Positions 48,048 to 64,000 of a DNA stretch of 64,000 bases are shown one piece after another. The translations under genes and the position numbers were made by a program. Within the stretch, counting starts at the first letter, position 1; every line of letters starts with the position of its first letter. Under the pieces are notes generated by a model. It did no database searches, was not told the origin of the DNA, and saw nothing but the letters and a program-made list of their open reading frames with translations. The stretch is from Carpediemonas membranifera BICM (Eukaryota; Protista; Fornicata): positions 408,214 to 472,213 of the forward strand of contig JAHDYR010000053.1 of NCBI GenBank assembly GCA_019828565.1. Direction: 5' to 3'.

Positions 48048-48602
48048 ATGGCGCAGGGTTCGGATCCGCCGGATCCGACGGCAACACGCTTAGATAAGCT
48101 AGAAGCTTCAATCAATTCCATGTCCGAAGCCCTGAACAGGCTTGCTCCTCCGCCTCCGCCAGAGAAAGAACCTGACGACGAAATGCTCGAAAGTTCCACC
48201 GTTGCTAGGTTCAATACCTCCGAATCGTTGGAGGAGGACACGATGGAGGACATAGATGCAACTCTGGCAGAGATGGACACCTTCTCGGAGTTACCAAGCA
48301 AGAGACCTCTCAAGGCAGAAGCGAAGTGGCTTCAACGCGTTGTCGTGATCACTAGTGCTCTCCCAGATTCCGCGACGAAACAACGTCTTCTTCTCGAACT
48401 ACAGGCTCGTAGAATGGTCCTAGACCTCAAAGATGATAACTGGTCCGATGCCACGACCGAGCTGTTTCAGGACCTCTTCAACAGCACAGAAAGCAAGAGC
48501 AGCCGCACCATCGCTTACTGCGCAGCGAAGGCCCGCTCTAAGGGCAGGCGTAAGGACACCAGCGGTAACATGGGGGGGTTTCACAAGAAGAAGAGAACAT
48601 AA
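48048..48602 (+). CDS. gag-like ORF1 of the DIRS-like element
   Basis: 184-aa ORF with coiled coil and basic tail, overlapping the RT ORF as in DIRS elements. Confidence 0.55.
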   Translation: MAQGSDPPDPTATRLDKLEASINSMSEALNRLAPPPPPEKEPDDEMLESSTVARFNTSESLEEDTMEDIDATLAEMDTFSELPSKRPLKAEAKWLQRVVVITSALPDSATKQRLLLELQARRMVLDLKDDNWSDATTELFQDLFNSTESKSSRTIAYCAAKARSKGRRKDTSGNMGGFHKKKRT

Positions 48603-49698
48603 CAACCTCTGTTCATCAATTCCCGTCGATGAACGCGAGGTGGTGGTTATGGGAAAGGCTCGGCGCCTCGGACGAGGTGGTCGGCTGGCTCCGTCACGGC
48701 GTACCTATCAAGCTAACAGGCACTCCCCGCCACCCACGCCACAACGGCGCCTGGACCCACGGCTCACCCCAAGGCTCGACGAGATGGTCCGACTTGGCGT
48801 GATCTCACCCTGTACCAGCGGGCAACTCCGGCACAGTGCCCCGCTCTTCGCGGTTGCAAAGGGCGAGCACGATGTCCGCCCGGTACACGACCTACGCGAC
48901 CTCAACGCAATCACTGCGGAGACGCGGGTCTTCCGGCTCTTCGGCCTAAAACGAGCAGTGCGCAACCTCAAGCGCAACGACTTCATGCTCAAGATCGACT
49001 TAGCCTCCGGCTACCACCAGATGGGTGTGGCTCCGACCGACTCCACGCTACTGGGGATCGTCCTCCCGAACGGGCAGGCGTACAGATACAACACACTAGG
49101 GTTCGGCTGGACCGCTGCCCCGTTCGTGTTCCAGTCTACGTCCATCCAGCTAGCAAAGATACTCGCGAACCGCTTCAACGTGACAATAGCGGTGTACCTC
49201 GACGACTTTCTCATCTCACATCGGTCACGTCGCCACCTAGCAGACGCCGCTCCCCAAATAGTCGCGCTCATGAGGTCGCTGGGAGCTATCCCAGGGCTCA
49301 ACAAGTGCATCCTAACTCCCACACAACGCCTGGAGTACCTAGGAGTCACCATCAACACAGCCGCCGAGACACTGCAGATTTCCAAGGACAGAGCCGATCG
49401 CTATGCAACATCAATCGAGCAGGCCCTCAGGGCCGGCAGGATCGATGCAACCGAGTGGCAACGCCTACTAGGCCGCCTCTCGTTCTTCGCAAGTACGACA
49501 CAGTTCGCCAGGCTCCAGCTCAGATCACTCCAGGCCCTACATCCCGCCCCGACGCTTCACATCTCGCAGCAGATGCGTCGCCAGCTCAACAGCTGGCTAG
49601 CGCTGCTCAGAGATCGTCCATCCAGACCCTTCGCTCAGGCCAGGGCAGACTGGGAGATCAAGGACGAACTCCAGCTCTCGGTCGCATCCGACGCGTCC
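48433..49698 (+). pseudogene. DIRS RT/RNase H, 5' part (disrupted at the RNase H SDAS motif). Other pieces at 56599-56730 and 63936-64000.
   Basis: RT motifs are present and the frame continues after each LINE copy. Confidence 0.85.
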
Positions 49699-49714
49699 AA
49701 AAATTTTCCGCACC

Positions 49715-50260
49715 ATGGGCAAAAGTAGTTCTGGCTACAGAGGCCCAATCTTAGCGAAAGACACTGGTCCGCAACCACAAAGTACCACTGCTGCTCAAAG
49801 CAGTATCGCCGACCAACGCTTCCTGACGAGGAAGCACCTCAAATATGTTTCATCCGCCCCTCCTGTCCTCAAAAGACAACTACTAGCAGGCATTGCCTTT
49901 ATTGGGGACCCCGTAATCATCCATCCCTTCAAAACTGAGCTTGCAACACACTCATCGACGGGCAATTTCGTCTCGGTGGCAATCCCAAACCTAAAACGGG
50001 ACAACGCCCGCTATAAGCGGGCTAAGGATGCCTGTAATGACCTACTCCAAGATGCTGAGCACCTTGCAGCTGCATTTGGGCTCTCCATCCGGGAAGGTAT
50101 CCTCAAACTCTTTCCCCTCATTGCCTATGATCTTGTCCACACGGTTGGAACGCTTAAGGCTGCCCTAATCCACTGCAGGTTCACGGGACTCCCCCAGCTA
50201 GCAGCATGGACTGGAGCAAGTTCGCAGATTTCATCTCCGCCAGATGCCCTACAGTGTTAG
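49715..50260 (+). CDS. LINE ORF-A (181 aa, unknown function)
   Basis: Starts 16 nt from the element 5' end and is identical in copy 2 (56747-57292). Confidence 0.6.
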   Translation: MGKSSSGYRGPILAKDTGPQPQSTTAAQSSIADQRFLTRKHLKYVSSAPPVLKRQLLAGIAFIGDPVIIHPFKTELATHSSTGNFVSVAIPNLKRDNARYKRAKDACNDLLQDAEHLAAAFGLSIREGILKLFPLIAYDLVHTVGTLKAALIHCRFTGLPQLAAWTGASSQISSPPDALQC

Positions 50261-53200
50261 ACCAACGGAACGATCCTTGGCCTCCAACCATATCCACTGT
50301 CCCGAACTCTCCGAGCCTGACATGGCAGGCAGTCGGTCAAAGAGAGCCTCTTGGTCCCCGCATCGCTCACTCCGGCCGGCCCGGCCCCATTGTATCTCCG
50401 GATGGTCTCAACCTCACGCCGTTCATGGGCCTCGAGGTAATCCACTTACTGTATGGCGCCTCTCCCGTGTTGGGAGGACATGCGATGACTGAGCTTTATG
50501 CCGAATGGGGTGGAGCCACAGCGGCCGACCTTCAGTCTTCCTTATCGAATACCTTATCAGACAGCCTTATCTCTCCCATTCGCCGGAAGGCCTATCCAGT
50601 CGATGACTCTACTATATCCATAAGTTCCTGTTCAAACTCTGATGTTGAGCTCGCAAGCCCGATCCCTGTTAGCGTGGAAGAGGTTGCGCGGCAGATTCGG
50701 AAAGAAATATCGTCTTGCGAAGAGAACAGCATTTATCCATCATCCCCGATCGTAGCTGAGGAGCCTAACGCCCGTTGGGGCCCTCTCATGAGCATCCCAG
50801 TTCACGCCGACGGCAACTGTGGCCTTCACTCACTTGCTGTCTCTCTGGGTATGACGGGCCTGACGAGACGAGAAGCCGTGTCGAAACTTGCCTCCGCCAT
50901 CCAGAATGGTACAGTGGATCTTAACTCCTCGTGGAGATCCACGGTGCGCACTTTAACCACACACACCACCGCTAGCGACATTGGTAGTGCCTTCCTATCC
51001 ACCACAGACCTCCGCAATATTGCATCGCTCTTCGGAAAAAATGTGCTTATTGCTCATCGATATGATGCCAACACAGTCTCAGTAACCATCCCAGCATTAT
51101 CCGAGTTCTCTACACTTCCTCTCAATATTGACGCGCTCAAAACGATGCTCAAAACCGATTACATCCTCATTAGACTAAGTGCTCTGCACTTCACGCCTCT
51201 TTTTCCGTCTGTGAGGAGCGCAGAAGCAAGGCGCCTGCAATATGCTGAATATCGTCCAAGAAGAGCCCCCTCTAGTGTGGCTCGCAACAACATCGCCGCT
51301 GAAGGCCTCGATAGCGCCCCCTCTAGTGTGGCCCGCAACAACCGTGATGGCGTCCATGGCGCTCTCATAGGCTTGTCTGGCAAGAGAGAGGGTCCTGTTT
51401 CTCATATCCTAGTGGTCGACTTTGAAGGACTAGGAACTGCCGTAGACCGCAGAGCCACCAAACAGAGTCGCGTCTCATATCCCGTAGAGGCCGGCGCCAC
51501 ACTCCTAGCCCGCGTCAAGGATCCTGAAACGGGGATAATGATGTGGGACGTCGCAGGGGTCCACTGGGGCGGCTTAGAAGTTGATATCCCAGCGCAGTTA
51601 ATGCAGACAGCTTTATACCAAGCGGCAGTTGTTCATGGGTGTCCTCCCATGAGCTTCAGAGTACACCCCGACCACCCCGGGATCTCATTCCCCAGCCCGA
51701 CCGACTGGCTTCACCACCTCACGGTCATAGTGAGCTCCCTCCCGAACTGCATCATGGTCGCCAAAGACCCGAGACTTGAGAACTCCGTCCTAGAGTCATG
51801 GGTCTCGGAAAGCGATGCCCCCTTCCTTGACAAGGTCTATGACATAAGTGATCTAGAGTCCATAGACAAAAGATCCTTTGGGCATATCCATGACTACTGC
51901 CGTTCACCCGAGTTCTCTGAGGCGATGTCGATAGCCCAATGTCTCACAATGGTGAAGTGCCCCTGCCCGTACCACATTGGAACAGATCCAGGCTACCATT
52001 GTGCTCTCAGTGACACTGTAGCTTTCGCGGCGGTACTGCACACAGTCTCATGTCTCGACCGAACATCTAGGGGAGCTATCACATCCACGTACTCTGAAAT
52101 CACTGATGCATGGAGGAAAGACTTGGATGTCCTCATCGGCAACTGGTCCTCTCTCCTGCCCGACCTGGCCGTGCTACTACTCCAAGACCTCCACCTGCCA
52201 ACGCTTGAGGAGCTGCACCACATCCTCAAGGAGTACGTAATAGCACCTAAGGGTGGCTGCTCCTTCCCCACAGGTGATAGGGCCAGACAGGCTATGACGC
52301 GCCGTCAATTTATTGCAGTGCGGAGCCCAGCTCGGCGAGGGTGGGAATGGTTTGATCCTCTTGCCAAGATGATAGCGGTGGCGGATGCGGCAGGCATAGT
52401 CCCTCCAAACAGCCTAGAACAGCCATTCATCAGGATAGCGACGGTGAATAACGACAGCTCCTTCAGCAATCAGTTGACGGCTCAGCAAGTTTACTGGGAG
52501 TGCCCTCCTCACCGAGACCTACCGCAATCTGCTGCAGAGCTTCTGGCTCTCAACGTTCCTCCCTCGGCAGACAACTCCAAAGGAGTAGTCAAGAGGTCCT
52601 ACAGAGCGCCGGATCATTGGTTTCTAGTCCCGAGAATCCCCAACAAGCCAGTGCGAGGGCTCCGCAAAGTCAGACTGAGAGGGCCCATGACTCGAGGAGA
52701 CATGGATGCCCTCATACAGAAGGCAGAAACAGCATGGGTCAGCGAAGCGTGGGACCTTTCTCCGGTGTTCAAAGCTCTCCAGAGTGCCCGAGCTCACGAC
52801 GGTAACTGGAGTAAGGTTGAGCCACCGGCTTCTTCCACGCCAGCTCCAAGCTTAGCCACGCGAGTCTCGCCTGCGACCTTCAGGAATCAGAGAGGGCGAA
52901 GTCAAGCAGGTAGACGACCAGTAAATGGTCACCTCTACTCGTGGAATTGCACATCACTCAACATCACCAAGATGACTCTTGCTCTAGTACAAGACGTGGA
53001 CATCATGGCCATTCAGGAGCTATGGTGGTGGGCCCAGTCCCCGGAGCTGCCCACAACGAATGACAAGGTCCTGCTATACCACGGAGTGATCAAGTCAGAG
53101 TCCGAGACAAAGCATCTAGGCGTAGGCATCATGCTGAGGAAGGAATTAGCTGAGCTCTGCACATACGTCGAGAACCAACCCCACTCTCCAAGGTTGATTC

Positions 53201-54078
53201 AAGCTGACCTAGGCTGCGTGTTTGTAACAGCTGGCAAACTGAAGGTCCGTGTCATGTCCATCTATAGTCCATGCACGGGAGCACAAGCCAAGAAAGAGTT
53301 CCACACTCTACTGTCCTCCGAGGTGAAGAAAGCTATTGAGCAAGGGCTCCAAGTTCTTGTCATGGGAGACTTCAACACGAACCTACTAGATCCATCGACG
53401 CTGTGGGCTACCACCCTAAAGGAGTGTGGCTTGAGACTGGTAGTGCCCGACGGCCCGACCTTCATGGACAGAGTAATTGATGGCATCGCAGCAACACCTA
53501 AGCTGGCTGATCTCATCGAGAAGCCGCTCACAGTATCCCTTGAACCCAAAGGACACAGAGCGGTTGTAGCAAGATCAGGCATAACGGGTTACTTTCGCAC
53601 GAGGAGCAAGGCAACAGCAGTCCTCAACGAAAGACATGTGGCTAACGTACTTGAATGCAGCAAGGATCATCGAAAGGCGAGGACTCTCCTGAGGAACATC
53701 AGCCACCTTGATGTCGACCAAGCCTTTCAAAGCCTGACGTCGACTATCAACCGATGGGCGTTGGTGGACACTGCGGCCTCACATGAAGTGAGAGAAGTCG
53801 AGAGAGCAGAAGACTACGACCACTGGTTTGTCGCCGGAGAGCAGATCGGTATTTCCCCTGAACGGCTCTATGAGCTCATCATTGAGGATCATCGCCACCA
53901 ACATCAGCTCAAGGAGAGGACGAGCAGAGGCCCCAAAGCTCTCGTGTGCTCTGAGCTATCATCAGCAATGCTATCAGTAGCGTTAGCATCCTCGGAGAGC
54001 CACGCCCACTCAACACTCAAAGCCTACCATGCCCGAGCCAAGCGAGTCTCTGAGAGCATGGATGTCATGTCCCCCTGA
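50206..54078 (+). CDS. LINE polyprotein N-part: OTU-like protease, Maelstrom/DEDD nuclease, APE endonuclease
   Basis: ADGNCGLHSL...LHF; VVDFE, YPVEAG, VHGCP, CPYH...HCALSD; SWNC, IQE, GVGI, SIYSP, MGDFN, PTF..IDGI. Confidence 0.85.
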   Translation: MDWSKFADFISARCPTVLDQRNDPWPPTISTVPNSPSLTWQAVGQREPLGPRIAHSGRPGPIVSPDGLNLTPFMGLEVIHLLYGASPVLGGHAMTELYAEWGGATAADLQSSLSNTLSDSLISPIRRKAYPVDDSTISISSCSNSDVELASPIPVSVEEVARQIRKEISSCEENSIYPSSPIVAEEPNARWGPLMSIPVHADGNCGLHSLAVSLGMTGLTRREAVSKLASAIQNGTVDLNSSWRSTVRTLTTHTTASDIGSAFLSTTDLRNIASLFGKNVLIAHRYDANTVSVTIPALSEFSTLPLNIDALKTMLKTDYILIRLSALHFTPLFPSVRSAEARRLQYAEYRPRRAPSSVARNNIAAEGLDSAPSSVARNNRDGVHGALIGLSGKREGPVSHILVVDFEGLGTAVDRRATKQSRVSYPVEAGATLLARVKDPETGIMMWDVAGVHWGGLEVDIPAQLMQTALYQAAVVHGCPPMSFRVHPDHPGISFPSPTDWLHHLTVIVSSLPNCIMVAKDPRLENSVLESWVSESDAPFLDKVYDISDLESIDKRSFGHIHDYCRSPEFSEAMSIAQCLTMVKCPCPYHIGTDPGYHCALSDTVAFAAVLHTVSCLDRTSRGAITSTYSEITDAWRKDLDVLIGNWSSLLPDLAVLLLQDLHLPTLEELHHILKEYVIAPKGGCSFPTGDRARQAMTRRQFIAVRSPARRGWEWFDPLAKMIAVADAAGIVPPNSLEQPFIRIATVNNDSSFSNQLTAQQVYWECPPHRDLPQSAAELLALNVPPSADNSKGVVKRSYRAPDHWFLVPRIPNKPVRGLRKVRLRGPMTRGDMDALIQKAETAWVSEAWDLSPVFKALQSARAHDGNWSKVEPPASSTPAPSLATRVSPATFRNQRGRSQAGRRPVNGHLYSWNCTSLNITKMTLALVQDVDIMAIQELWWWAQSPELPTTNDKVLLYHGVIKSESETKHLGVGIMLRKELAELCTYVENQPHSPRLIQADLGCVFVTAGKLKVRVMSIYSPCTGAQAKKEFHTLLSSEVKKAIEQGLQVLVMGDFNTNLLDPSTLWATTLKECGLRLVVPDGPTFMDRVIDGIAATPKLADLIEKPLTVSLEPKGHRAVVARSGITGYFRTRSKATAVLNERHVANVLECSKDHRKARTLLRNISHLDVDQAFQSLTSTINRWALVDTAASHEVREVERAEDYDHWFVAGEQIGISPERLYELIIEDHRHQHQLKERTSRGPKALVCSELSSAMLSVALASSESHAHSTLKAYHARAKRVSESMDVMSP

Positions 54079-54107
54079 ATTCTTTAGATACGTCCATTGG
54101 AAGCTTT

Positions 54108-56210
54108 TTGAAGGGGCAGGCCAGAGTGTCTGGTCTTCGCAGAGACCTGGAAGGCTTACTCAGAGGACCCGGCCTTCCTGCTACCACCACAGTAGGAGGC
54201 AGAGTGATCACCAACCGAGAAGAAGTAGCCAAGGCCTTCGAGGAGTGGTATGCGTCAGTATCATATGTGGCAGGAGCAGTAGAACCATCCATCTCTCGCC
54301 CCGATATAGAGCTCGAAATCACGGACACTCTCCTGGAAGGGGCTCTCAAATCTGCCAAGAATAGATCAGCCCCAGGCAGTGATGGACTAACCCCGGCAAT
54401 TTTCAAATATAGCCCAGTCCTCAAGGAGGCGCTCAAGACTCTGCTACAGAAGTGCATTGACCAACTCAAGACCCCAGCAGAGTGGCATACCGCCGTGGTA
54501 ATTCCATTGAAAAAGCCCGGCTCTACTAGCGATGCTCCTGTGGCGTTCAGACCTATCTCCCTACTTTCCACAGCCCACAAGGTGCTCGGCACAATGATGA
54601 TCCGCACGATTGACCGAGACAACCCTCTTCCCCCTGAACAATACGGTGCAAGGCCGGGTGTTTCATCGGTTGATGCACTATGGGCTATTGAGCACGCGAG
54701 ACGTGGGTTCAAAGCGACCCACATTGGGACTCTGGACGTGGCTAAGGCCTTTGACCGTGTCCCGAGGAGAGATGCATTGGACTCGTTGAGGGGGAACAGA
54801 AGGGCCATTGAGATGTTGAAGGAGATGCATTTGCACACAAGGATCTCTATGCGAGGTAGCAGCACTAGCGCCGCTACCAACACAGGAGTACGGCAAGGAT
54901 GCACCACTGCTCCCTTCATCTTCACAAGATACCTTGCGGAAGTCCCTCACATCATTGCAAGCTTAACTGCTCTAGGGAAGGAAGCAATTGAGAAGCTTCC
55001 TCCCGACATAGAGACCCTGAGACGAGTGGCAGCAAGGCCGTGCGTTCCCTGGATTGTCACAGTCCTGTTCGTTGATGACATTACAATAGTAGCTCCCTCC
55101 CTTAAGTGGTTGGAGGCAGCACTTACGGCGGCATGGACATGCATGCTAGCGCTATCCTTGGAGCCCAACGATAAGACCACCTATGTCTCAGAGGACGACA
55201 CCCCCTCCCTCACCATCCATGGCAATCCAGTCATTAAGAGAGACGCGGTCAAGCTCCTAGGGGTCCTCTTCGATACGTCCCGAGACTTCTCCACCCAGAA
55301 TAGGACTATGGGCGAAAGGATAGACAGAGAGCTACGACTACTGAGAGCTAGCGGCGTGATGCACTCCAAGTTCTGTCCTCGCATTGTAGAGGTCTACACC
55401 CTCCCCAAGCTGCTGTACGGGTGGAGCGTCTGGGCTAATCATAAGGCTGTCTCCCAGGTAGGCAAGCTTGCATCGGCAGCCCTAAGGATCAGCCCAACTG
55501 CATCGGAGGCGAAGTACCTGGAGCTAGGCTGGCTGCATCCAGAGGCAATGCTCCTGCTGGACAGATTCAAGCAAGGGGTGAGATGGGCGAGAATCCATCC
55601 GGGCAAGGATCTCCCAGACTGCATTGCTGAGGCACAAGGCAGCCTTGGCCTGTCCCACTCCGACAGCCTTGACCTAGCAGCCTGTCGAGCAGCCCAGCTC
55701 TCTCACGACATAATCTGCCGTGGTAACAAAGTGGCTGTCAGGAGATACGTCACGGAGTCGGCACTCACCCGCCCTTTTACCCGCTCTAACTACCCGGCCA
55801 GGCAGCCATACCTCGACCATCTAACGGCTGGGCCAGCGAAGCGCCTCGCGATGCTACGGCTATCGTGTCTACCAATGCCAACGAGAGGGGCTCTTCCTGA
55901 CGCGTGGCAGCCGGTCAGGGGAATCCTACAGGACCTGAAGGATGAACCGGAAGCCGCCGCAGCTCTTGAGGCATGTCCTCTCTGTCAGGGTGAGGCCATC
56001 GCCGCGGCTGTGATTGAGATCCTGACGTCCCCTACCAAGACCTTAGCAGTGCTGAGATCCAGGACGTGGGTTGTCCTGAACCAGACCCACTTGGCTAAGT
56101 GCGACCACTTCAAGATTAACCCCATCCTCCTTTTCAAGGACCCCCTGACCCTGAGCAGGCGTGACGACGCCAAGCTCACACATATGTTGAGTGTACTTTG
56201 TGACGCGTGA
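54108..56210 (+). CDS. LINE reverse transcriptase (non-LTR type)
   Basis: SAPGSDG, FRPISLL, QYGAR, LDVAKAFD, GVRQG, LFVDD, KLLG. C-terminal CPLC. Confidence 0.92.
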   Translation: MKGQARVSGLRRDLEGLLRGPGLPATTTVGGRVITNREEVAKAFEEWYASVSYVAGAVEPSISRPDIELEITDTLLEGALKSAKNRSAPGSDGLTPAIFKYSPVLKEALKTLLQKCIDQLKTPAEWHTAVVIPLKKPGSTSDAPVAFRPISLLSTAHKVLGTMMIRTIDRDNPLPPEQYGARPGVSSVDALWAIEHARRGFKATHIGTLDVAKAFDRVPRRDALDSLRGNRRAIEMLKEMHLHTRISMRGSSTSAATNTGVRQGCTTAPFIFTRYLAEVPHIIASLTALGKEAIEKLPPDIETLRRVAARPCVPWIVTVLFVDDITIVAPSLKWLEAALTAAWTCMLALSLEPNDKTTYVSEDDTPSLTIHGNPVIKRDAVKLLGVLFDTSRDFSTQNRTMGERIDRELRLLRASGVMHSKFCPRIVEVYTLPKLLYGWSVWANHKAVSQVGKLASAALRISPTASEAKYLELGWLHPEAMLLLDRFKQGVRWARIHPGKDLPDCIAEAQGSLGLSHSDSLDLAACRAAQLSHDIICRGNKVAVRRYVTESALTRPFTRSNYPARQPYLDHLTAGPAKRLAMLRLSCLPMPTRGALPDAWQPVRGILQDLKDEPEAAAALEACPLCQGEAIAAAVIEILTSPTKTLAVLRSRTWVVLNQTHLAKCDHFKINPILLFKDPLTLSRRDDAKLTHMLSVLCDA

Positions 56211-56518
56211 CTGGTAGGTTCCCTCGCTTACATAGGAAAACGCCACCGTCCTCCCCGGTCTCAGGACCTCCTCGATCATCGTCCTGAGGGAGCCCCATCG
56301 GGCTCGGAGCACAGAGTCCCGCAGCGCCAAGAGCTGGAAGTTGTGAGCTGGCCGACCCGCGTGGGTCATCTTTTTACCCTTCTTCGAAGGGGTTTTAGGC
56401 CCTCCTCTCCCTGCAGCTTCAGAACAGTACTCTTGGGCGCCGCAGCTCTGGCTTCCAATGTTATGAGAACCGTTGCCCTCCTGCGGCTGATCACCGCTCG
56501 TCTGGCTCGGGTTGTGGC

Positions 56519-56586
56519 CAGTGCCTGGAGGTGGACACCCCGGCACTGTATCAAAAAATAAACTCAAAAACTCAAAAACTCAAAAC
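56519..56586 (+). other. LINE 3' terminal stem-loop followed by A-rich (AAAAACTC)n tail
   Basis: CAGTGCC...GGCACTG stem at 56519-56548 directly before the tail. Repeated at about 63858-63923. Confidence 0.6.
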
Positions 56587-56730
56587 TCCGACGCGTCCTC
56601 CTTCGCGTGGGGCGCCTGCCTATTCAACGGCGACCAGGGCCGCTCGGCTCAAGGCCGCTTTCCTCCCGAGTTCCGAGACTCTCATATCGGAGTCAAGGAG
56701 CTCTACGCGATTGGCCAGGCTATCAAGCTC

Positions 56731-59700
56731 AATTTTTTTCCGCACCATGGGCAAAAGTAGTTCTGGCTACAGAGGCCCAATCTTAGCGAAAGACACTGGT
56801 CCGCAACCACAAAGTACCACTGCTGCTCAAAGCAGTATCGCCGACCAACGCTTCCTGACGAGGAAGCACCTCAAATATGTTTCATCCGCCCCTCCTGTCC
56901 TCAAAAGACAACTACTAGCAGGCATTGCCTTTATTGGGGACCCCGTAATCATCCATCCCTTCAAAACTGAGCTTGCAACACACTCATCGACGGGCAATTT
57001 CGTCTCGGTGGCAATCCCAAACCTAAAACGGGACAACGCCCGCTATAAGCGGGCTAAGGATGCCTGTAATGACCTACTCCAAGATGCTGAGCACCTTGCA
57101 GCTGCATTTGGGCTCTCCATCCGGGAAGGTATCCTCAAACTCTTTCCCCTCATTGCCTATGATCTTGTCCACACGGTTGGAACGCTTAAGGCTGCCCTAA
57201 TCCACTGCAGGTTCACGGGACTCCCCCAGCTAGCAGCATGGACTGGAGCAAGTTCGCAGATTTCATCTCCGCCAGATGCCCTACAGTGTTAGACCAACGG
57301 AACGATCCTTGGCCTCCAACCATATCCACTGTCCCGAACTCTCCGAGCCTGACATGGCAGGCAGTCGGTCAAAGAGAGCCTCTTGGTCCCCGCATCGCTC
57401 ACTCCGGCCGGCCCGGCCCCATTGTATCTCCGGATGGTCTCAACCTCACGCCGTTCATGGGCCTCGAGGTAATCCACTTACTGTATGGCGCCTCTCCCGT
57501 GTTGGGAGGACATGCGATGACTGAGCTTTATGCCGAATGGGGTGGAGCCACAGCGGCCGACCTTCAGTCTTCCTTATCGAATACCTTATCAGACAGCCTT
57601 ATCTCTCCCATTCGCCGGAAGGCCTATCCAGTCGATGACTCTACTATATCCATAAGTTCCTGTTCAAACTCTGATGTTGAGCTCGCAAGCCCGATCCCTG
57701 TTAGCGTGGAAGAGGTTGCGCGGCAGATTCGGAAAGAAATATCGTCTTGCGAAGAGAACAGCATTTATCCATCATCCCCGATCGTAGCTGAGGAGCCTAA
57801 CGCCCGTTGGGGCCCTCTCATGAGCATCCCAGTTCACGCCGACGGCAACTGTGGCCTTCACTCACTTGCTGTCTCTCTGGGTATGACGGGCCTGACGAGA
57901 CGAGAAGCCGTGTCGAAACTTGCCTCCGCCATCCAGAATGGTACAGTGGATCTTAACTCCTCGTGGAGATCCACGGTGCGCACTTTAACCACACACACCA
58001 CCGCTAGCGACATTGGTAGTGCCTTCCTATCCACCACAGACCTCCGCAATATTGCATCGCTCTTTTGGAAAAAATGTGCTTATTGCTCATCGATATGATG
58101 CCAACACAGTCTCAGTAACCATCCCAGCATTATCCGAGTTCTCTACACTTCCTCTCAATATTGACGCGCTCAAAACGATGCTCAAAACCGATTACATCCT
58201 CATTAGACTGAGTGCTCTGCACTTCACGCCTCTTTTCCGTCTGTGAGGAGCGCAGAAGCAAGGCGCCTGCAATATGCTGAATATCGTCCAAGAAGAGCCC
58301 CCTCTAGTGTGGCTCGCAACAACATCGCCGCTGAAGGCCTCGATAGCGCCCCCTCTAGTGTGGCCCGCAACAACATCGCCGCTGAAGGCCTCGATAGCGC
58401 CCCCTCTAGTGTGGCTCGCAACAACATCGTCGCTGGAGGCCTCGATAGCGCCCCCTCTAGTGTGGCCCGCAACAACATCGCCGCTGGAGGCCTCGATAGC
58501 GCCCCCTCTAGTGTGGCCCGCAACAACATCGCCGCTGAAGGCCTCGATAGCGCCCCCTCTAGTGTGGCCCGCAACAACATCGCCGCTGAAGGCCTCGATA
58601 GCGCCCCCTCTAGTGTGGCCCGCAACAACATCGCCGCTGAAGGCCTCGATAGCGCCCCCTCTAGTGTGGCCCGCAACAACCGTGATGGCGTCCATGGCGC
58701 TCTCATAGGCTTGTCTGGCAAGAGAGAGGGTCCTGTTTCTCATATCCTAGTGGTCGACTTTGAAGGACTAGGAACTGCCGTAGACCGCAGAGCCACCAAA
58801 CAGAGTCGCGTCTCATATCCCGTAGAGGCCGGCGCCACACTCCTAGCCCGCGTCAAGGATCCTGAAACGGGGATAATGATGTGGGACGTCGCAGGGGTCC
58901 ACTGGGGCGGCTTAGAAGTTGATATCCCAGCGCAGTTAATGCAGACAGCTTTATACCAAGCGGCAGTTGTTCATGGGTGTCCTCCCATGAGCTTCAGAGT
59001 ACACCCCGACCACCCCGGGATCTCATTCCCCAGCCCGACCGACTGGCTTCACCACCTCACGGTCATAGTGAGCTCCCTCCCGAACTGCATCATGGTCGCC
59101 AAAGACCCGAGACTTGAGAACTCCGTCCTAGAGTCATGGGTCTCGGAAAGCGATGCCCCCTTCCTTGACAAGGTCTATGACATAAGTGATCTAGAGTCCA
59201 TAGACAAAAGATCCTTTGGGCATATCCATGACTACTGCCGTTCACCCGAGTTCTCTGAGGCGATGTCGATAGCCCAATGTCTCACAATGGTGAAGTGCCC
59301 CTGCCCGTACCACATTGGAACAGATCCAGGCTACCATTGTGCTCTCAGTGACACTGTAGCTTTCGCGGCGGTACTGCACACAGTCTCATGTCTCGACCGA
59401 ACATCTAGGGGAGCTATCACATCCACGTACTCTGAAATCACTGATGCATGGAGGAAAGACTTGGATGTCCTCATCGGCAACTGGTCCTCTCTCCTGCCCG
59501 ACCTGGCCGTGCTACTACTCCAAGACCTCCACCTGCCAACGCTTGAGGAGCTGCACCACATCCTCAAGGAGTACGTAATAGCACCTAAGGGTGGCTGCTC
59601 CTTCCCCACAGGTGATAGGGCCAGACAGGCTATGACGTGCCGTCAATTTATTGCAGTGCGGAGCCCAGCTCGGCGAGGGTGGGAATGGTTTGATCCTCTT

Positions 59701-62700
59701 GCCAAGATGATAGCGGTGGCGGATGCGGCAGGCATAGTCCCTCCAAACAGCCTAGAACAGCCATTCATCAGGATAGCGACGGTGAATAACGACAGCTCCT
59801 TCAGCAATCAGTTGACGGCTCAGCAAGTTTACTGGGAGTGCCCTCCTCACCGAGACCTACCGCAATCTGCTGCAGAGCTTCTGGCTCTCAACGTTCCTCC
59901 CTCGGCAGACAACTCCAAAGGAGTAGTCAAGAGGTCCTACAGAGCGCCGGATCATTGGTTTCTAGTCCCGAGAATCCCCAACAAGCCAGTGCGAGGGCTC
60001 CGCAAAGTCAGACTGAGAGGGCCCATGACTCGAGGAGACATGGATGCCCTCATACAGAAGGCAGAAACAGCATGGGTCAGCGAAGCGTGGGACCTTTCTC
60101 CGGTGTTCAAAGCTCTCCAGAGTGCCCGAGCTCACGACGGTAACTGGAGTAAGGTTGAGCCACCGGCTTCTTCCACGCCAGCTCCAAGCTTAGCCACGCG
60201 AGTCTCGCCTGCGACCTTCAGGAATCAGAGAGGGCGAAGTCAAGCAGGTAGACGACCAGTAAATGGTCACCTCTACTCGTGGAATTGCACATCACTCAAC
60301 ATCACCAAGATGACTCTTGCTCTAGTACAAGACGTGGACATCATGGCCATTCAGGAGCTATGGTGGTGGGCCCAGTCCCCGGAGCTGCCCACAACGAATG
60401 ACAAGGTCCTGCTATACCACGGAGTGATCAAGTCAGAGTCCGAGACAAAGCATCTAGGCGTAGGCATCATGCTGAGGAAGGAATTAGCTGAGCTCTGCAC
60501 ATACGTCGAGAACCAACCCCACTCTCCAAGGTTGATTCAAGCTGACCTAGGCTGCGTGTTTGTAACAGCTGGCAAACTGAAGGTCCGTGTCATGTCCATC
60601 TATAGTCCATGCACGGGAGCACAAGCCAAGAAAGAGTTCCACACTCTACTGTCCTCCGAGGTGAAGAAAGCTATTGAGCAAGGGCTCCAAGTTCTTGTCA
60701 TGGGAGACTTCAACACGAACCTACTAGATCCATCGACGCTGTGGGCTACCACCCTAAAGGAGTGTGGCTTGAGACTGGTAGTGCCCGACGGCCCGACCTT
60801 CATGGACAGAGTAATTGATGGCATCGCAGCAACACCTAAGCTGGCTGATCTCATCAAGAAGCCGCTCACAGTATCCCTTGAACCCAAAGGACACAGAGCG
60901 GTTGTAGCAAGATCAGGCATAACGGGTTACTTTCGCACGAGGAGCAAGGCAACAGCAGTCCTCAACGAAAGACATGTGGCTAACGTACTTGAATGCAGCA
61001 AGGATCATCGAAAGGCGAGGACTCTCCTGAGGAACATCAGCCACCTTGATGTCGACCAAGCCTTTCAAAGCCTGACGTCGACTATCAACCGATGGGCGTT
61101 GGTGGACACTGCGGCCTCACATGAAGTGAGAGAAGTCGAGAGAGCAGAAGACTACGACCACTGGTTTGTCGCCGGAGAGCAGATCGGTATTTCCCCTGAA
61201 CGGCTCTATGAGCTCATCATTGAGGATCATCGCCACCAACATCAGCTCAAGGAGAGGACGAGCAGAGGCCCCAAAGCTCTCGTGTGCTCTGAGCTATCAT
61301 CAGCAATGCTATCAGTAGCGTTAGCATCCTCGGAGAGCCACGCCCACTCAACACTCAAAGCCTACCATGCCCGAGCCAAGCGAGTCTCTGAGAGCATGGA
61401 TGTCATGTCCCCTGAATTCTTTAGATACGTCCATTGGAAGCTTTTTGAAGGGGCAGGCCAGAGTGTCTGGTCTTCGCAGAGACCTGGAAGGCTTACTCAG
61501 AGGACCCGGCCTTCCTGCTACCACCACAGTAGGAGGCAGAGTGATCACCAACCGAGAAGAAGTAGCCAAGGCCTTCGAGGAGTGGTATGCGTCAGTATCA
61601 TATGTGGCAGGAGCAGTAGAACCATCCATCTCTCGCCCCGATATAGAGCTCGAAATCACGGACACTCTCCTGGAAGGGGCTCTCAAATCTGCCAAGAATA
61701 GATCAGCCCCAGGCAGTGATGGACTAACCCCGGCAATTTTCAAATATTGCCCAGTCCTCAAGGAGGCGCTCAAGACTCTGCTACAGAAGTGCATTGACCA
61801 ACTCAAGACCCCAGCAGAGTGGCATACCGCCGTGGTAATTCCATTGAAAAAGCCCGGCTCTACTAGCGATGCTCCTGTGGCGTTCAGACCTATCTCCCTA
61901 CTTTCCACAGCCCACAAGGTGCTCGGCACAATGATGATCCGCACGATTGACCGAGACAACCCTCTTCCCCCTGAACAATACGGTGCAAGGCCGGGTGTTT
62001 CATCGGTTGATGCACTATGGGCTATTGAGCACGCGAGACGTGGGTTCAAAGCGACCCACATTGGGACTCTGGACGTGGCTAAGGCCTTTGACCGTGTCCC
62101 GAGGAGAGATGCATTGGACTCGTTGAGGGGGGAACAGAAGGGCCATTGAGATGTTGAAGGAGATGCATTTGCACACAAGGATCTCTATGCGAGGTAGCAG
62201 CACTAGCGCCGCTACCAACACAGGAGTACGGCAAGGATGCACCACTGCTCCCTTCATCTTCACAAGATACCTTGCGGAAGTCCCTCACATCATTGCAAGC
62301 TTAACCGCTCTAGGGAAGGAAGCAATTGAGAAGCTTCCTCCCGACATAGAGACCCTGAGACGAGTGGCAGCAAGGCCGTGCGTTCCCTGGATTGTCACAG
62401 TCCTGTTCGTTGATGACATTACAATAGTAGCTCCCTCCCTTAAGTGGTTGGAGGCAGCACTTACGGCGGCATGGACATGCATGCTAGCGCTATCCTTGGA
62501 GCCCAACGATAAGACCACCTATGTCTCAGAGGACGACACCCCCTCCCTCACCATCCATGGCAATCCAGTCATTAAGAGAGACGCGGTCAAGCTCCTAGGG
62601 GTCCTCTTCGATACGTCCCGAGACTTCTCCACCCAGAATAGGACTATGGGCGAAAGGATAGACAGAGAGCTACGACTACTGAGAGCTAGCGGCGTGATGC

Positions 62701-63923
62701 ACTCCAAGTTCTGTCCTCGCATTGTAGAGGTCTACACCCTCCCCAAGCTGCTGTACGGGTGGAGCGTCTGGGCTAATCATAAGGCTGTCTCCCAGGTAGG
62801 CAAGCTTGCATCGGCAGCCCTAAGGATCAGCCCAACTGCATCGGAGGCGAAGTACCTGGAGCTAGGCTGGCTGCATCCAGAGGCAATGCTCCTGCTGGAC
62901 AGATTCAAGCAAGGGGTGAGATGGGCGAGAATCCATCCGGGCAAGGATCTCCCAGACTGCATTGCTGAGGCACAAGGCAGCCTTGGCCTGTCCCACTCCG
63001 ACAGCCTTGACCTAGCAGCCTGTCGAGCAGCCCAGCTCTCTCACGACATAATCTGCCGTGGTAACAAAGTGGCTGTCAGGAGATACGTCACGGAGTCGGC
63101 ACTCACCCGCCCTTTTACCCGCTCTAACTACCCGGCCAGGCAGCCATACCTCGACCATCTAACGGCTGGGCCAGCGAAGCGCCTCGCGATGCTACGGCTA
63201 TCGTGTCTACCAATGCCAACGAGAGGGGCTCTTCCTGACGCGTGGCAGCCGGTCAGGGGAATCCTACAGGACCTGAAGGATGAACCGGAAGCCGCCGCAG
63301 CTCTTGAGGCATGTCCTCTCTGTCAGGGTGAGGCCATCGCCGCGGCTGTGATTGAGATCCTGACGTCCCCTACCAAGACCTTAGCAGTGCTGAGATCCAG
63401 GACGTGGGTTGTCCTGAACCAGACCCACTTGGCTAAGTGCGACCACTTCAAGATTAACCCCATCCTCCTTTTCAAGGACCCCCTGACCCTGAGCAGGCGT
63501 GACGACGCCAAGCTCACACATATGTTGAGTGTACTTTGTGACGCGTGACTGGTAGGTTCCCTCGCTTACATAGGAAAACGCCACCGTCCTCCCCGGTCTC
63601 AGGACCTCCTCGATCATCGTCCTGAGGGGAGCCCCATCGGGCTCGGAGCACAGAGTCCCGCAGCGCCAAGAGCTGGAAGTTGTGAGCTGGCCGACCCGCG
63701 TGGGTCATCTTTTTACCCTTCTTCGAAGGGGTTTTAGGCCCTCCTCTCCCTGCAGCTTCAGAACAGTACTCTTGGGCGCCGCAGCTCTGGCTTCCAATGT
63801 TATGAGAACCGTTGCCCTCCTGCGGCTGATCACCGCTCGTCTGGCTCGGGTTGTGGCCAGTGCCTGGAGGTGGACACCCCGGCACTGTATCAAAAAATAA
63901 ACTCAAAAACTCAAAAACTCAAA
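56731..63923 (+). mobile_element. Full-length non-LTR retrotransposon copy 2 (near-identical to copy 1, +306 bp VNTR), TSD GCTATCAAGCTC
   Basis: TSD at 56719-56730 and 63924-63935, same 5' start and tail. Single-base indels occur in homopolymers. Confidence 0.93.
58297..58680 (+). repeat. 51-bp in-frame coding tandem repeat (SAPSSVARNNIAAEGLD) x7.5, versus x1.5 in copy 1 (51265-51342)
   Basis: Directly visible. The 6x51=306 bp difference accounts for the length difference between the LINE copies. Confidence 0.95.
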
Positions 63924-64000
63924 GCTATCAAGCTCACCCCAACCCAGCGCACCAGGACCCAACTAGCTATCTTTTCGGACAACACCGCGGCCATCGCATG

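Follow-up and report, generated by a model that had tools for sequence, protein, structure and literature searches.

A predicted DEDDh exonuclease domain with a Maelstrom-type signature in the ORF1 region of LINE retrotransposons of Carpediemonas membranifera

The window analysed here, a stretch of 64,000 nucleotides from contig JAHDYR010000053.1 of the fornicate Carpediemonas membranifera (assembly GCA_019828565.1, positions 408,214 to 472,213), contains two copies of a long interspersed nuclear element (LINE). In the long open reading frame (ORF) of this retrotransposon, the apurinic/apyrimidinic endonuclease (APE) is preceded by a domain of about 240 residues that is predicted to be a 3'-5' exonuclease of the DEDDh type and that resembles the nuclease domains of Maelstrom (MAEL) and of the arenavirus nucleoprotein (NP). 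The evidence for the domain, its distribution among LINE families, its relationships and its possible roles are described below.

The LINE copies and the domain they carry

Copy 1 of the element occupies positions 49699..56586 and copy 2 positions 56732..63923, both on the forward strand. Each copy is bounded by its own target-site duplication (TSD), which is 12 bp long for copy 1 (TCCGACGCGTCC, at 49687-49698 and 56587-56598) and 13 bp long for copy 2 (GCTATCAAGCTCA, at 56719-56731 and 63924-63936), and each ends in a (CTCAAAA)n tail without poly(A). Comparison of the window with itself shows that the element of 6.9-7.2 kb is present twice (49704-56584 and 56736-63923) at 99.8% identity, the main difference between the copies being the number of 51-nt repeat units, which encode 17 amino acids each (APSSVARNNIAAEGLDS). 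These repeats lie just upstream of the exonuclease domain, with 2 units in copy 1 (51265-51342) and 8 in copy 2 (58294-58680). A tandem array was considered as an explanation for the pair and rejected, given that each insertion has a target-site duplication of its own; the copies are independent insertions in the same orientation, about 130 bp apart. An ORF flanking them (48433-49728) has a reverse transcriptase (RT) match, so that both LINE copies sit inside another retroelement.

The long ORF of copy 1 (50206..54078, forward strand) encodes 1290 amino acids and consists, in this order, of an N-terminal motif resembling those of ovarian tumour (OTU) proteases, the 17-aa repeats, the exonuclease domain, a stretch of about 280 amino acids and the APE-type endonuclease. 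The latter is recognized by Pfam (52978..53415, forward strand, amino acids 925-1070; PF03372, Exo_endo_phos, E 2.9e-7), as is the reverse transcriptase in the next ORF, 54108-56210 (54513..55265, forward strand; PF00078, RVT_1, E 1.9e-20), whose nearest relative among solved structures is the human L1 ORF2p (E 5e-11). No RNase H domain was found by Pfam in the RT ORFs. With an APE and an RT, target-site duplications, a defined 3' tail and multiple copies, the carrier is a genuine LINE of the APE type.

The exonuclease domain spans positions 51388..52110 of copy 1 (forward strand, approximately amino acids 395-635 of the ORF), as supported by the topology of AlphaFold2 (AF2) models, fold matches and conservation, and, by translation, positions 58726..59448 of copy 2 (forward strand, offset +7338). 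The two copies do not differ by a single nucleotide over the 753 nt that include the domain (58696-59448 in copy 2). A sequence-only reading of the window had noticed the motifs HILVVDFEG, YPVEAG, AVVHGCPP and CPYH-x6-YHCALSD in this region, and all four are indeed present in the translation of positions 51403-52050 of the forward strand (amino acids 400-615 of ORF 50206-54078), upstream of the APE in the same ORF and intact in both copies.

The domain is by no means confined to the window. The genome of C. membranifera (24.2 Mb in 69 contigs, the window belonging to contig C39) was searched with the window domain, which yielded 17 copies that are about 100% identical, along with more distant families (identities of 53%, 47%, about 29% and about 25%); a family profile gave at least 151 domain matches that fall into roughly ten score classes. 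The 17 copies, identical over the domain, point to recent activity of the element. At four loci inspected for their context (L036, L046, L034 and L037), the domain is always located upstream of the APE and RT on the same strand, and the same arrangement is found in L038, L039 and L042, the last of them from the second assembly described next. Searched exhaustively, a set of 1.8 billion representative proteins contained three matches, all of them LINE ORFs. One is a C. membranifera protein annotated merely as hypothetical or endonuclease-domain (KAG9391364.1), whose sequence is that of a sister family located on the contig of the window (1,209,043 bp). The other two, on contigs of a second, unannotated eukaryote assembly (GCA_002919055.1, run SRR4018424), are ORF1 proteins of 1200 amino acids with an APE-RT ORF2 behind each of them; a third related LINE family was found in this assembly later.

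When the ORF1 proteins are compared in pairs across the families, the exonuclease domain is the sole region they have in common, and in some families it lies next to a C-terminal coiled coil. Stand-alone proteins of 140-440 amino acids carrying the domain were sought in a word-indexed profile search, and none was found. The domain is not a passenger but the one conserved module of the ORF1 region throughout a whole LINE lineage, of which several diverged families have been sampled and more are indicated by the score classes; in the window family, a single reading frame joins it to the APE. One LINE family (G000:C1:774999-775749 and about 12 similar places) has the domain split between two frames at the same profile position (approximately 160-164) in all listed copies, a shared break that was amplified together with that family.

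Conservation was assessed in an alignment of 11 intact sequences, from several Carpediemonas families and the three families of GCA_002919055.1, that are 22-53% identical to the window copy. In this alignment, 20 columns do not vary, all nine predicted catalytic and zinc-binding residues among them. The D-x-E pair of motif Exo I (D405 and E407; 51418..51426, forward strand, like all the residues that follow) lies on strand b1 in both structural models discussed below and is invariant in the 11 sequences. Glu428 of the PVE motif (51487..51489), invariant and placed on b2 in the model, is the predicted zinc ligand that corresponds to E137 of Bombyx MAEL. The acid of motif Exo II is Glu525, in AKDPRLE (51778..51780; E141 of the alignment, invariant), within the first turn of helix aB (138-148) that follows b4 (131-135), and the invariant Asp546 of VYDIS (51841..51843; D162 of the alignment) is at the end of b5. 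A composite zinc and Exo III block, C587-x2-H590-x7-H598-C599-x3-D603 (51964..52014), has all its Cys, His and Asp residues invariant and includes the H-x4-D motif (H598 and D603) that is the hallmark of DEDDh enzymes. A histidine in b3 with a proline 8 residues later, part of the EHHCHC set of MAEL, is present in most of the LINE families, and the position of the “HxIP” histidine is occupied by His in some families (HGCPP) and by Thr or Ser in others (TGLPP, SGLPP).

The two-metal active site, consisting of D405, E407, E525, H598 and D603, is accordingly predicted to be intact, and E428, C587, H590 and C599 form a Glu/Cys/His/Cys (ECHC) signature of a putative zinc site. The invariance of nine functional residues at 22-53% identity, together with the recurrence of the domain across the genome and in a second assembly, places this motif pattern beyond chance. 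The claim of the sequence-only reading that the DEDD site is intact holds in the sense that all catalytic positions are occupied and invariant, but the site actually reads D-E-E-h-D, the Exo II acid being a Glu within a motif that had not been listed.

Fold and family of the domain

Two AF2 models were built independently. Model 1 represents the window domain (alignment of 7 sequences; predicted local distance difference test score, pLDDT, 65; predicted template modelling score, pTM, 0.71), and model 2 represents the P0002 domain from GCA_002919055.1 (8 sequences, pLDDT 62.5, pTM 0.66). Both show the RNase H-like order of elements, b1-b2-b3-aA-b4-aB-b5-aC. Each model was aligned to 48,161 PDB representatives, with rows within one Z unit treated as ties, and every top rank in both comparisons is a DEDD exonuclease. 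For models 1 and 2, respectively, the Z-scores are 10.6 and 11.0 with RNase T, 10.3 and 11.6 with the exonuclease domain of DinG, 9.8 and 11.0 with Rv2179c, 9.4 and 11.9 with 3'hExo, 9.8 and 11.3 (also 11.1) with Bombyx Maelstrom, and 9.2 and 9.7 with Drosophila MAEL; those with the arenavirus NP are 7.1-7.2 and 8.0-8.1, over 130-148 aligned residues. At the level of the fold, the models clearly identify the domain as a DnaQ/DEDDh exonuclease. The sequence-only reading, which had looked to MAEL structures for confirmation, is borne out with respect to the DEDD fold and to the presence of MAEL among the matches (Z 9.2-11.3), but these matches are tied with those to RNase T and 3'hExo (10.6-11.9).

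The case for a more specific relationship to MAEL and the arenavirus NP comes from the signature residues. In Bombyx MAEL, the zinc is held by E137 on b2 and by C290, H293 and C302, in the arrangement C-x2-H-x8-C, and R306, four residues past C302, replaces the Asp of Exo III (PMC4408791). At the sequence level, the LINE domain has the same spacing, with C587-x2-H590-x8-C599 matching C290/H293/C302, a Glu on b2, and the Exo III Asp four residues past the last Cys. An Entamoeba MAEL protein that possesses both the DEDD and the ECHC sets is an active Mg/Mn-dependent exoribonuclease, and Lassa NP has both sets as well (PMC4408791), whereas cellular and phage DnaQ-like exonucleases are without such a zinc finger (PMC7968707). 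The supplementary alignment of Zhang et al. 2008 (PMC2628886) provides rows of protist MAELs that can be compared directly. The Entamoeba row [C]EYHKKINQKYH[C]ALSDA and the LINE domain CPYHIGTDPGYHCALSDT have in common the block CxYH-x6-YHCALSD; at Exo II, the kinetoplastid rows read NKGSLMD and the LINE domains read AKGVEME or AKDPRLE; and CDDIS of the kinetoplastid rows at b5 corresponds to VYDIS. On the strength of these matches in Cys/His spacing and in protist MAEL blocks, we interpret the domain as a DEDDh nuclease of the MAEL/arenavirus-NP type, an assignment that, resting as it does on a signature, we consider likely.

Several observations weigh against this assignment. The Pfam Maelstrom model (PF13017) matches neither the domain nor its relatives nor anything in the whole genome in six frames, and no Pfam model at all, RNase_T (PF00929) included, matches the domain or eight relatives at E<=10; the flanks of the domain yielded nothing relevant in Pfam either. 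When PDB sequences were searched with profiles built from 7 and from 12 sequences, neither MAEL nor Lassa NP nor RNase T was matched, and phmmer against the same sequences returned chance matches only. The tie between the Z-scores of MAEL and of generic DEDDh enzymes means that the fold search does not separate the two, and the confidence of the models is moderate (pLDDT 62-65) and low around the Cys/His loop. Furthermore, the Exo II acid is Glu instead of Asp in every family, and the motif comparison with protist MAELs uses text obtained by optical character recognition, in which Cys columns had been dropped and were restored from the consensus line. With the Pfam model failing and the structural scores tied, we stop short of calling the domain a proven MAEL family member. 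What stands of the earlier proposal of a MAEL-like nuclease in a LINE is the DnaQ/DEDDh fold, the catalytic set, the ECHC spacing and the Entamoeba block.

The corresponding alternative is that the domain stems from a generic DnaQ-like DEDDh exonuclease, with an RNase T, ERI or Rv2179c-like source, cellular or viral, and that the Cys and His residues near Exo III were gained independently. The nominal top structural matches (RNase T, 3'hExo, the DinG exonuclease and Rv2179c) agree with this possibility, as does the failure of the Pfam Maelstrom model; in addition, a search with language-model features and a shape search of the ESM Atlas, a library that is mostly prokaryotic and viral, led to RNase_T and Rv2179c-like clusters carrying PF00929 and PF16473. 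Yet the Pfam models of RNase_T and the Rv2179c-like family fail to match, too, and the generic enzymes are without the zinc finger (PMC7968707), whereas here the E/C/H/C residues are invariant and have the exact MAEL spacing. Five motif blocks resemble the protist MAEL rows, and Drosophila MAEL (4ybg) aligns over the greatest length (174 and 190 residues) and has the top Foldseek query TM-score (0.48 and 0.51) in both model runs. Alignment length and query TM-score are weak indications in favour of MAEL, and altogether an independent origin from a generic DEDDh enzyme appears possible but rather unlikely.

Among the candidate relatives, the protist MAEL exoribonucleases, namely that of Entamoeba histolytica (EHI_192630, Eh_67476664) and those of kinetoplastids, share with the LINE domain the DnaQ-H fold, the DEDDh and E/C/H/C sets, the C-x2-H-x8-C arrangement in which the last Cys directly follows the catalytic His and an Asp stands at C+4, and the blocks CxYH...YHCALSD, KG-x-x-M-[DE] and DDIS. 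The LINE domain differs from these proteins in that it is missed by Pfam Maelstrom, has Glu at Exo II, and is encoded in a LINE polyprotein or ORF1 rather than by a stand-alone host gene; moreover, several LINE families have Thr or Ser where the EHHCHC set has its “HxIP” His. Metazoan Maelstrom (PDB 4YBG, 5AF0 and 9NHC) is similar in structure (Z 9.2-11.3, alignments of 159-190 residues), in size (about 230 amino acids) and in the positions of the zinc tetrad. However, metazoan MAEL is an RNA-binding, transposon-silencing factor that has lost the DEDD residues and contains an HMG box, whereas the LINE domain is transposon-borne, lacks an HMG box and retains the catalytic set. The C-terminal exonuclease of the arenavirus NP (Lassa, LCMV) has the DEDDh and E/C/H/C sets and, like the LINE domain, is carried by a selfish RNA-templated replicator, but its Z-scores are lower (7.1-8.1), and its fusion partner is a nucleocapsid protein instead of an APE and RT. 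In Lassa NP, a longer loop than in the LINE domain separates C-x2-H from the final Cys.

A possible role in the replication of the element

ORF1 proteins of LINEs are RNA chaperones and, in a few clades, esterases. Occurring at the ORF1 position with its residues preserved, the domain described here is probably an active 3'-5' exo(ribo)nuclease, which would depend on Mg2+ or Mn2+ like the Entamoeba MAEL protein. We propose that this exonuclease acts inside the ribonucleoprotein of the element itself, on nucleic-acid 3' ends. Our best guess is that it would trim the template RNA as far as the defined (CTCAAAA)n tail that serves target-primed reverse transcription, would clear the template RNA from the hybrid with the cDNA, or both. 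Trimming is suggested because the insertions end in a precise (CTCAAAA)n tail without poly(A), and removal of the template RNA because no RNase H domain was detected in the element. The fold, the residues and their conservation, the LINE context and the recent transposition being given, we consider an active exonuclease with the MAEL signature, working on nucleic-acid 3' ends in the LINE ribonucleoprotein, to be the best explanation of the observations as a whole, with a probability of about 0.6. For the role by itself, 3'-end processing during replication is a tentative proposal that falls a little short of even odds, and some role other than those discussed here is unlikely.

The principal alternative with respect to function is counter-defence. 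By analogy with the arenavirus NP exonuclease or enzymes of the ERI-1/SDN type, the nuclease might break down double-stranded or small RNAs, thereby weakening the Argonaute-based silencing of the element by the host. The combination of ECHC and DEDDh is found in the Lassa NP exonuclease, a suppressor of innate sensing, and NP chains have the highest residue identity among the structural matches of model 1 (18-21%; in model 2, the identity is 17-18% and Exonuclease X is higher, at 20%). The host encodes two proteins of the Argonaute family with Piwi domains (G000:C7:87108-88037 and G000:C65:23790-24737), so that a target for such an activity exists in principle, and the success of the element is evident from its 17 identical copies and from at least 151 domain matches across the genome. 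Nevertheless, the ORF1 position and the fact that all families of the lineage have kept the domain, in both hosts, fit a core replicative role at least equally well, and the Z-scores of NP, at 7.1-8.1, are below those of MAEL and RNase T. We regard counter-defence as a conceivable role, albeit an unlikely one.

Still less likely is that the domain serves mainly as an RNA-binding module of the ORF1 protein, with the nuclease activity irrelevant or lost. Its ORF1 position, in some families beside a C-terminal coiled coil as in other ORF1 proteins, would suit such a function, which has a parallel in Bombyx MAEL, a protein that binds single-stranded RNA strongly without catalysis (PMC4408791); the presence of Glu rather than Asp at Exo II could be taken in the same sense. 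However, all five catalytic positions are invariant among sequences that are 22-53% identical to the window copy, whereas the inactive metazoan MAELs have lost theirs (PMC4408791), and Glu can still ligate a metal, a DEED variant having been reported in the DEDDy ORFs of retroelements (PMC5408684). Finally, the notion that the motifs belong to a host gene disrupted by or adjoining the LINE insertions, for which nothing speaks beyond the location of the two copies inside another element, can be dismissed, being refuted by the target-site duplications that bracket whole units of 6.9-7.2 kb including the domain, by the frame shared with the APE, and by the many copies and families with an APE and RT downstream wherever examined.

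Precedents, origin and other features of the element

Exonucleases of the DEDD superfamily are not wholly new to retroelements. The LTR (long terminal repeat) elements Juno and Vesta of bdelloid rotifers, as well as the Athena/Terminon Penelope-like elements (PLEs), carry DEDDy ORF3s, including a DEED variant, and the authors who described them remarked on a Cys-His-Cys motif in these proteins as reminiscent of Maelstrom (PMC5408684). The ORF3 products of Juno, Vesta and Athena are, like the LINE domain, accessory modules of retroelements with the intact residues of a 3'-5' exonuclease of the DnaQ superfamily. They differ in being of the DEDDy type (RNase D-like, Y-x3-D) and in being encoded by a separate ORF3 of rotifer LTR elements and PLEs, whereas the LINE domain is of the DEDDh type (YHCALSD), has the zinc signature of MAEL and is part of the ORF1 or polyprotein of APE-type LINEs of a metamonad. 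A precedent for position is the SGNH esterase in the ORF1 of CR1, L2 and RTEX elements, which is also a hydrolytic enzyme upstream of the APE-RT and is sometimes accompanied by a coiled coil, but has the fold and chemistry of an esterase, not those of a nuclease. A DEDDh/MAEL-type domain in any LINE is not reported in the literature searched, with Repbase and Dfam outside that search, and the statement of the sequence-only reading that no non-LTR clade with this architecture was known to it agrees with this result.

A catalytically intact 3'-5' exonuclease at the ORF1 position, as the residues predict, would extend the enzymatic repertoire of LINEs and raises the question of how such elements produce or safeguard the 3' end of the RNA that is used in target-primed reverse transcription, or how they escape silencing. 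Otherwise, the MAEL signature is found in a transposon-silencing factor and in an arenavirus nuclease of immune evasion, which makes the link between selfish elements and this clade of nucleases directly testable, with relevance to transposon and piRNA biology and by means of simple biochemistry. The host, according to its genome paper, is said to lack many canonical DNA-processing complexes, which lends added interest to the nucleases carried by its transposons.

The sequence-only reading had further supposed that the retroelement captured a silencing-type ribonuclease from its host. This part found no support: no MAEL was detected in the host with PF13017 in six frames, a weak negative, and protist MAELs are without a shown role in silencing. 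With the domain being an old ORF1 module, present throughout the lineage and in two hosts, a transfer in either direction is conceivable. The functions that the reading suggested, a counter-silencing decoy, a substitute for RNA processing or RNase H during target-primed reverse transcription, or a weapon against competing elements, are speculative. A far more remote possibility, to which we attach little probability, is that MAEL-type nucleases were already an ORF1 module in the ancestors of an old LINE lineage, in which they act as suppressors of RNA silencing, and that the MAEL domain of Maelstrom, the arenavirus NP exonuclease or both could descend from them; if so, Maelstrom would be a domesticated transposon weapon.

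Some minor observations concern the remainder of the element. The N-terminus of ORF 50206-54078 contains motifs like those of OTU proteases, with a Cys motif (DGNCGLHS, 50809-50832) and, downstream, a His motif (SALHFTPL, 51178-51201); this region has no Pfam match at E<=10 and no match among PDB sequences and is a lead at the motif level. In a small public run of 2017, guessed to be RNA, two short contigs (81 and 195 nt) fall on the element, the longer of which matches positions 52448-52642 of the window exactly; so little sequence is no evidence of expression. One of the contigs of GCA_002919055.1 with a related LINE includes a DNA_pol_B_2 gene (L042:874-2202), possibly part of a Polinton/Maverick-like element. 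The break in frame between the APE and the RT (54071-54076 and 54104-54109 in the window) coincides with a C run and a T run whose lengths vary by 1 nt among otherwise identical copies (C5/T5, C4/T5 and C4/T4) and thus looks like homopolymer length variation, through real indels or errors of long-read assembly, rather than a programmed frameshift. In a copy elsewhere in the genome (L037:7673-7793), the frame is open from the exonuclease domain through the APE into the RT.

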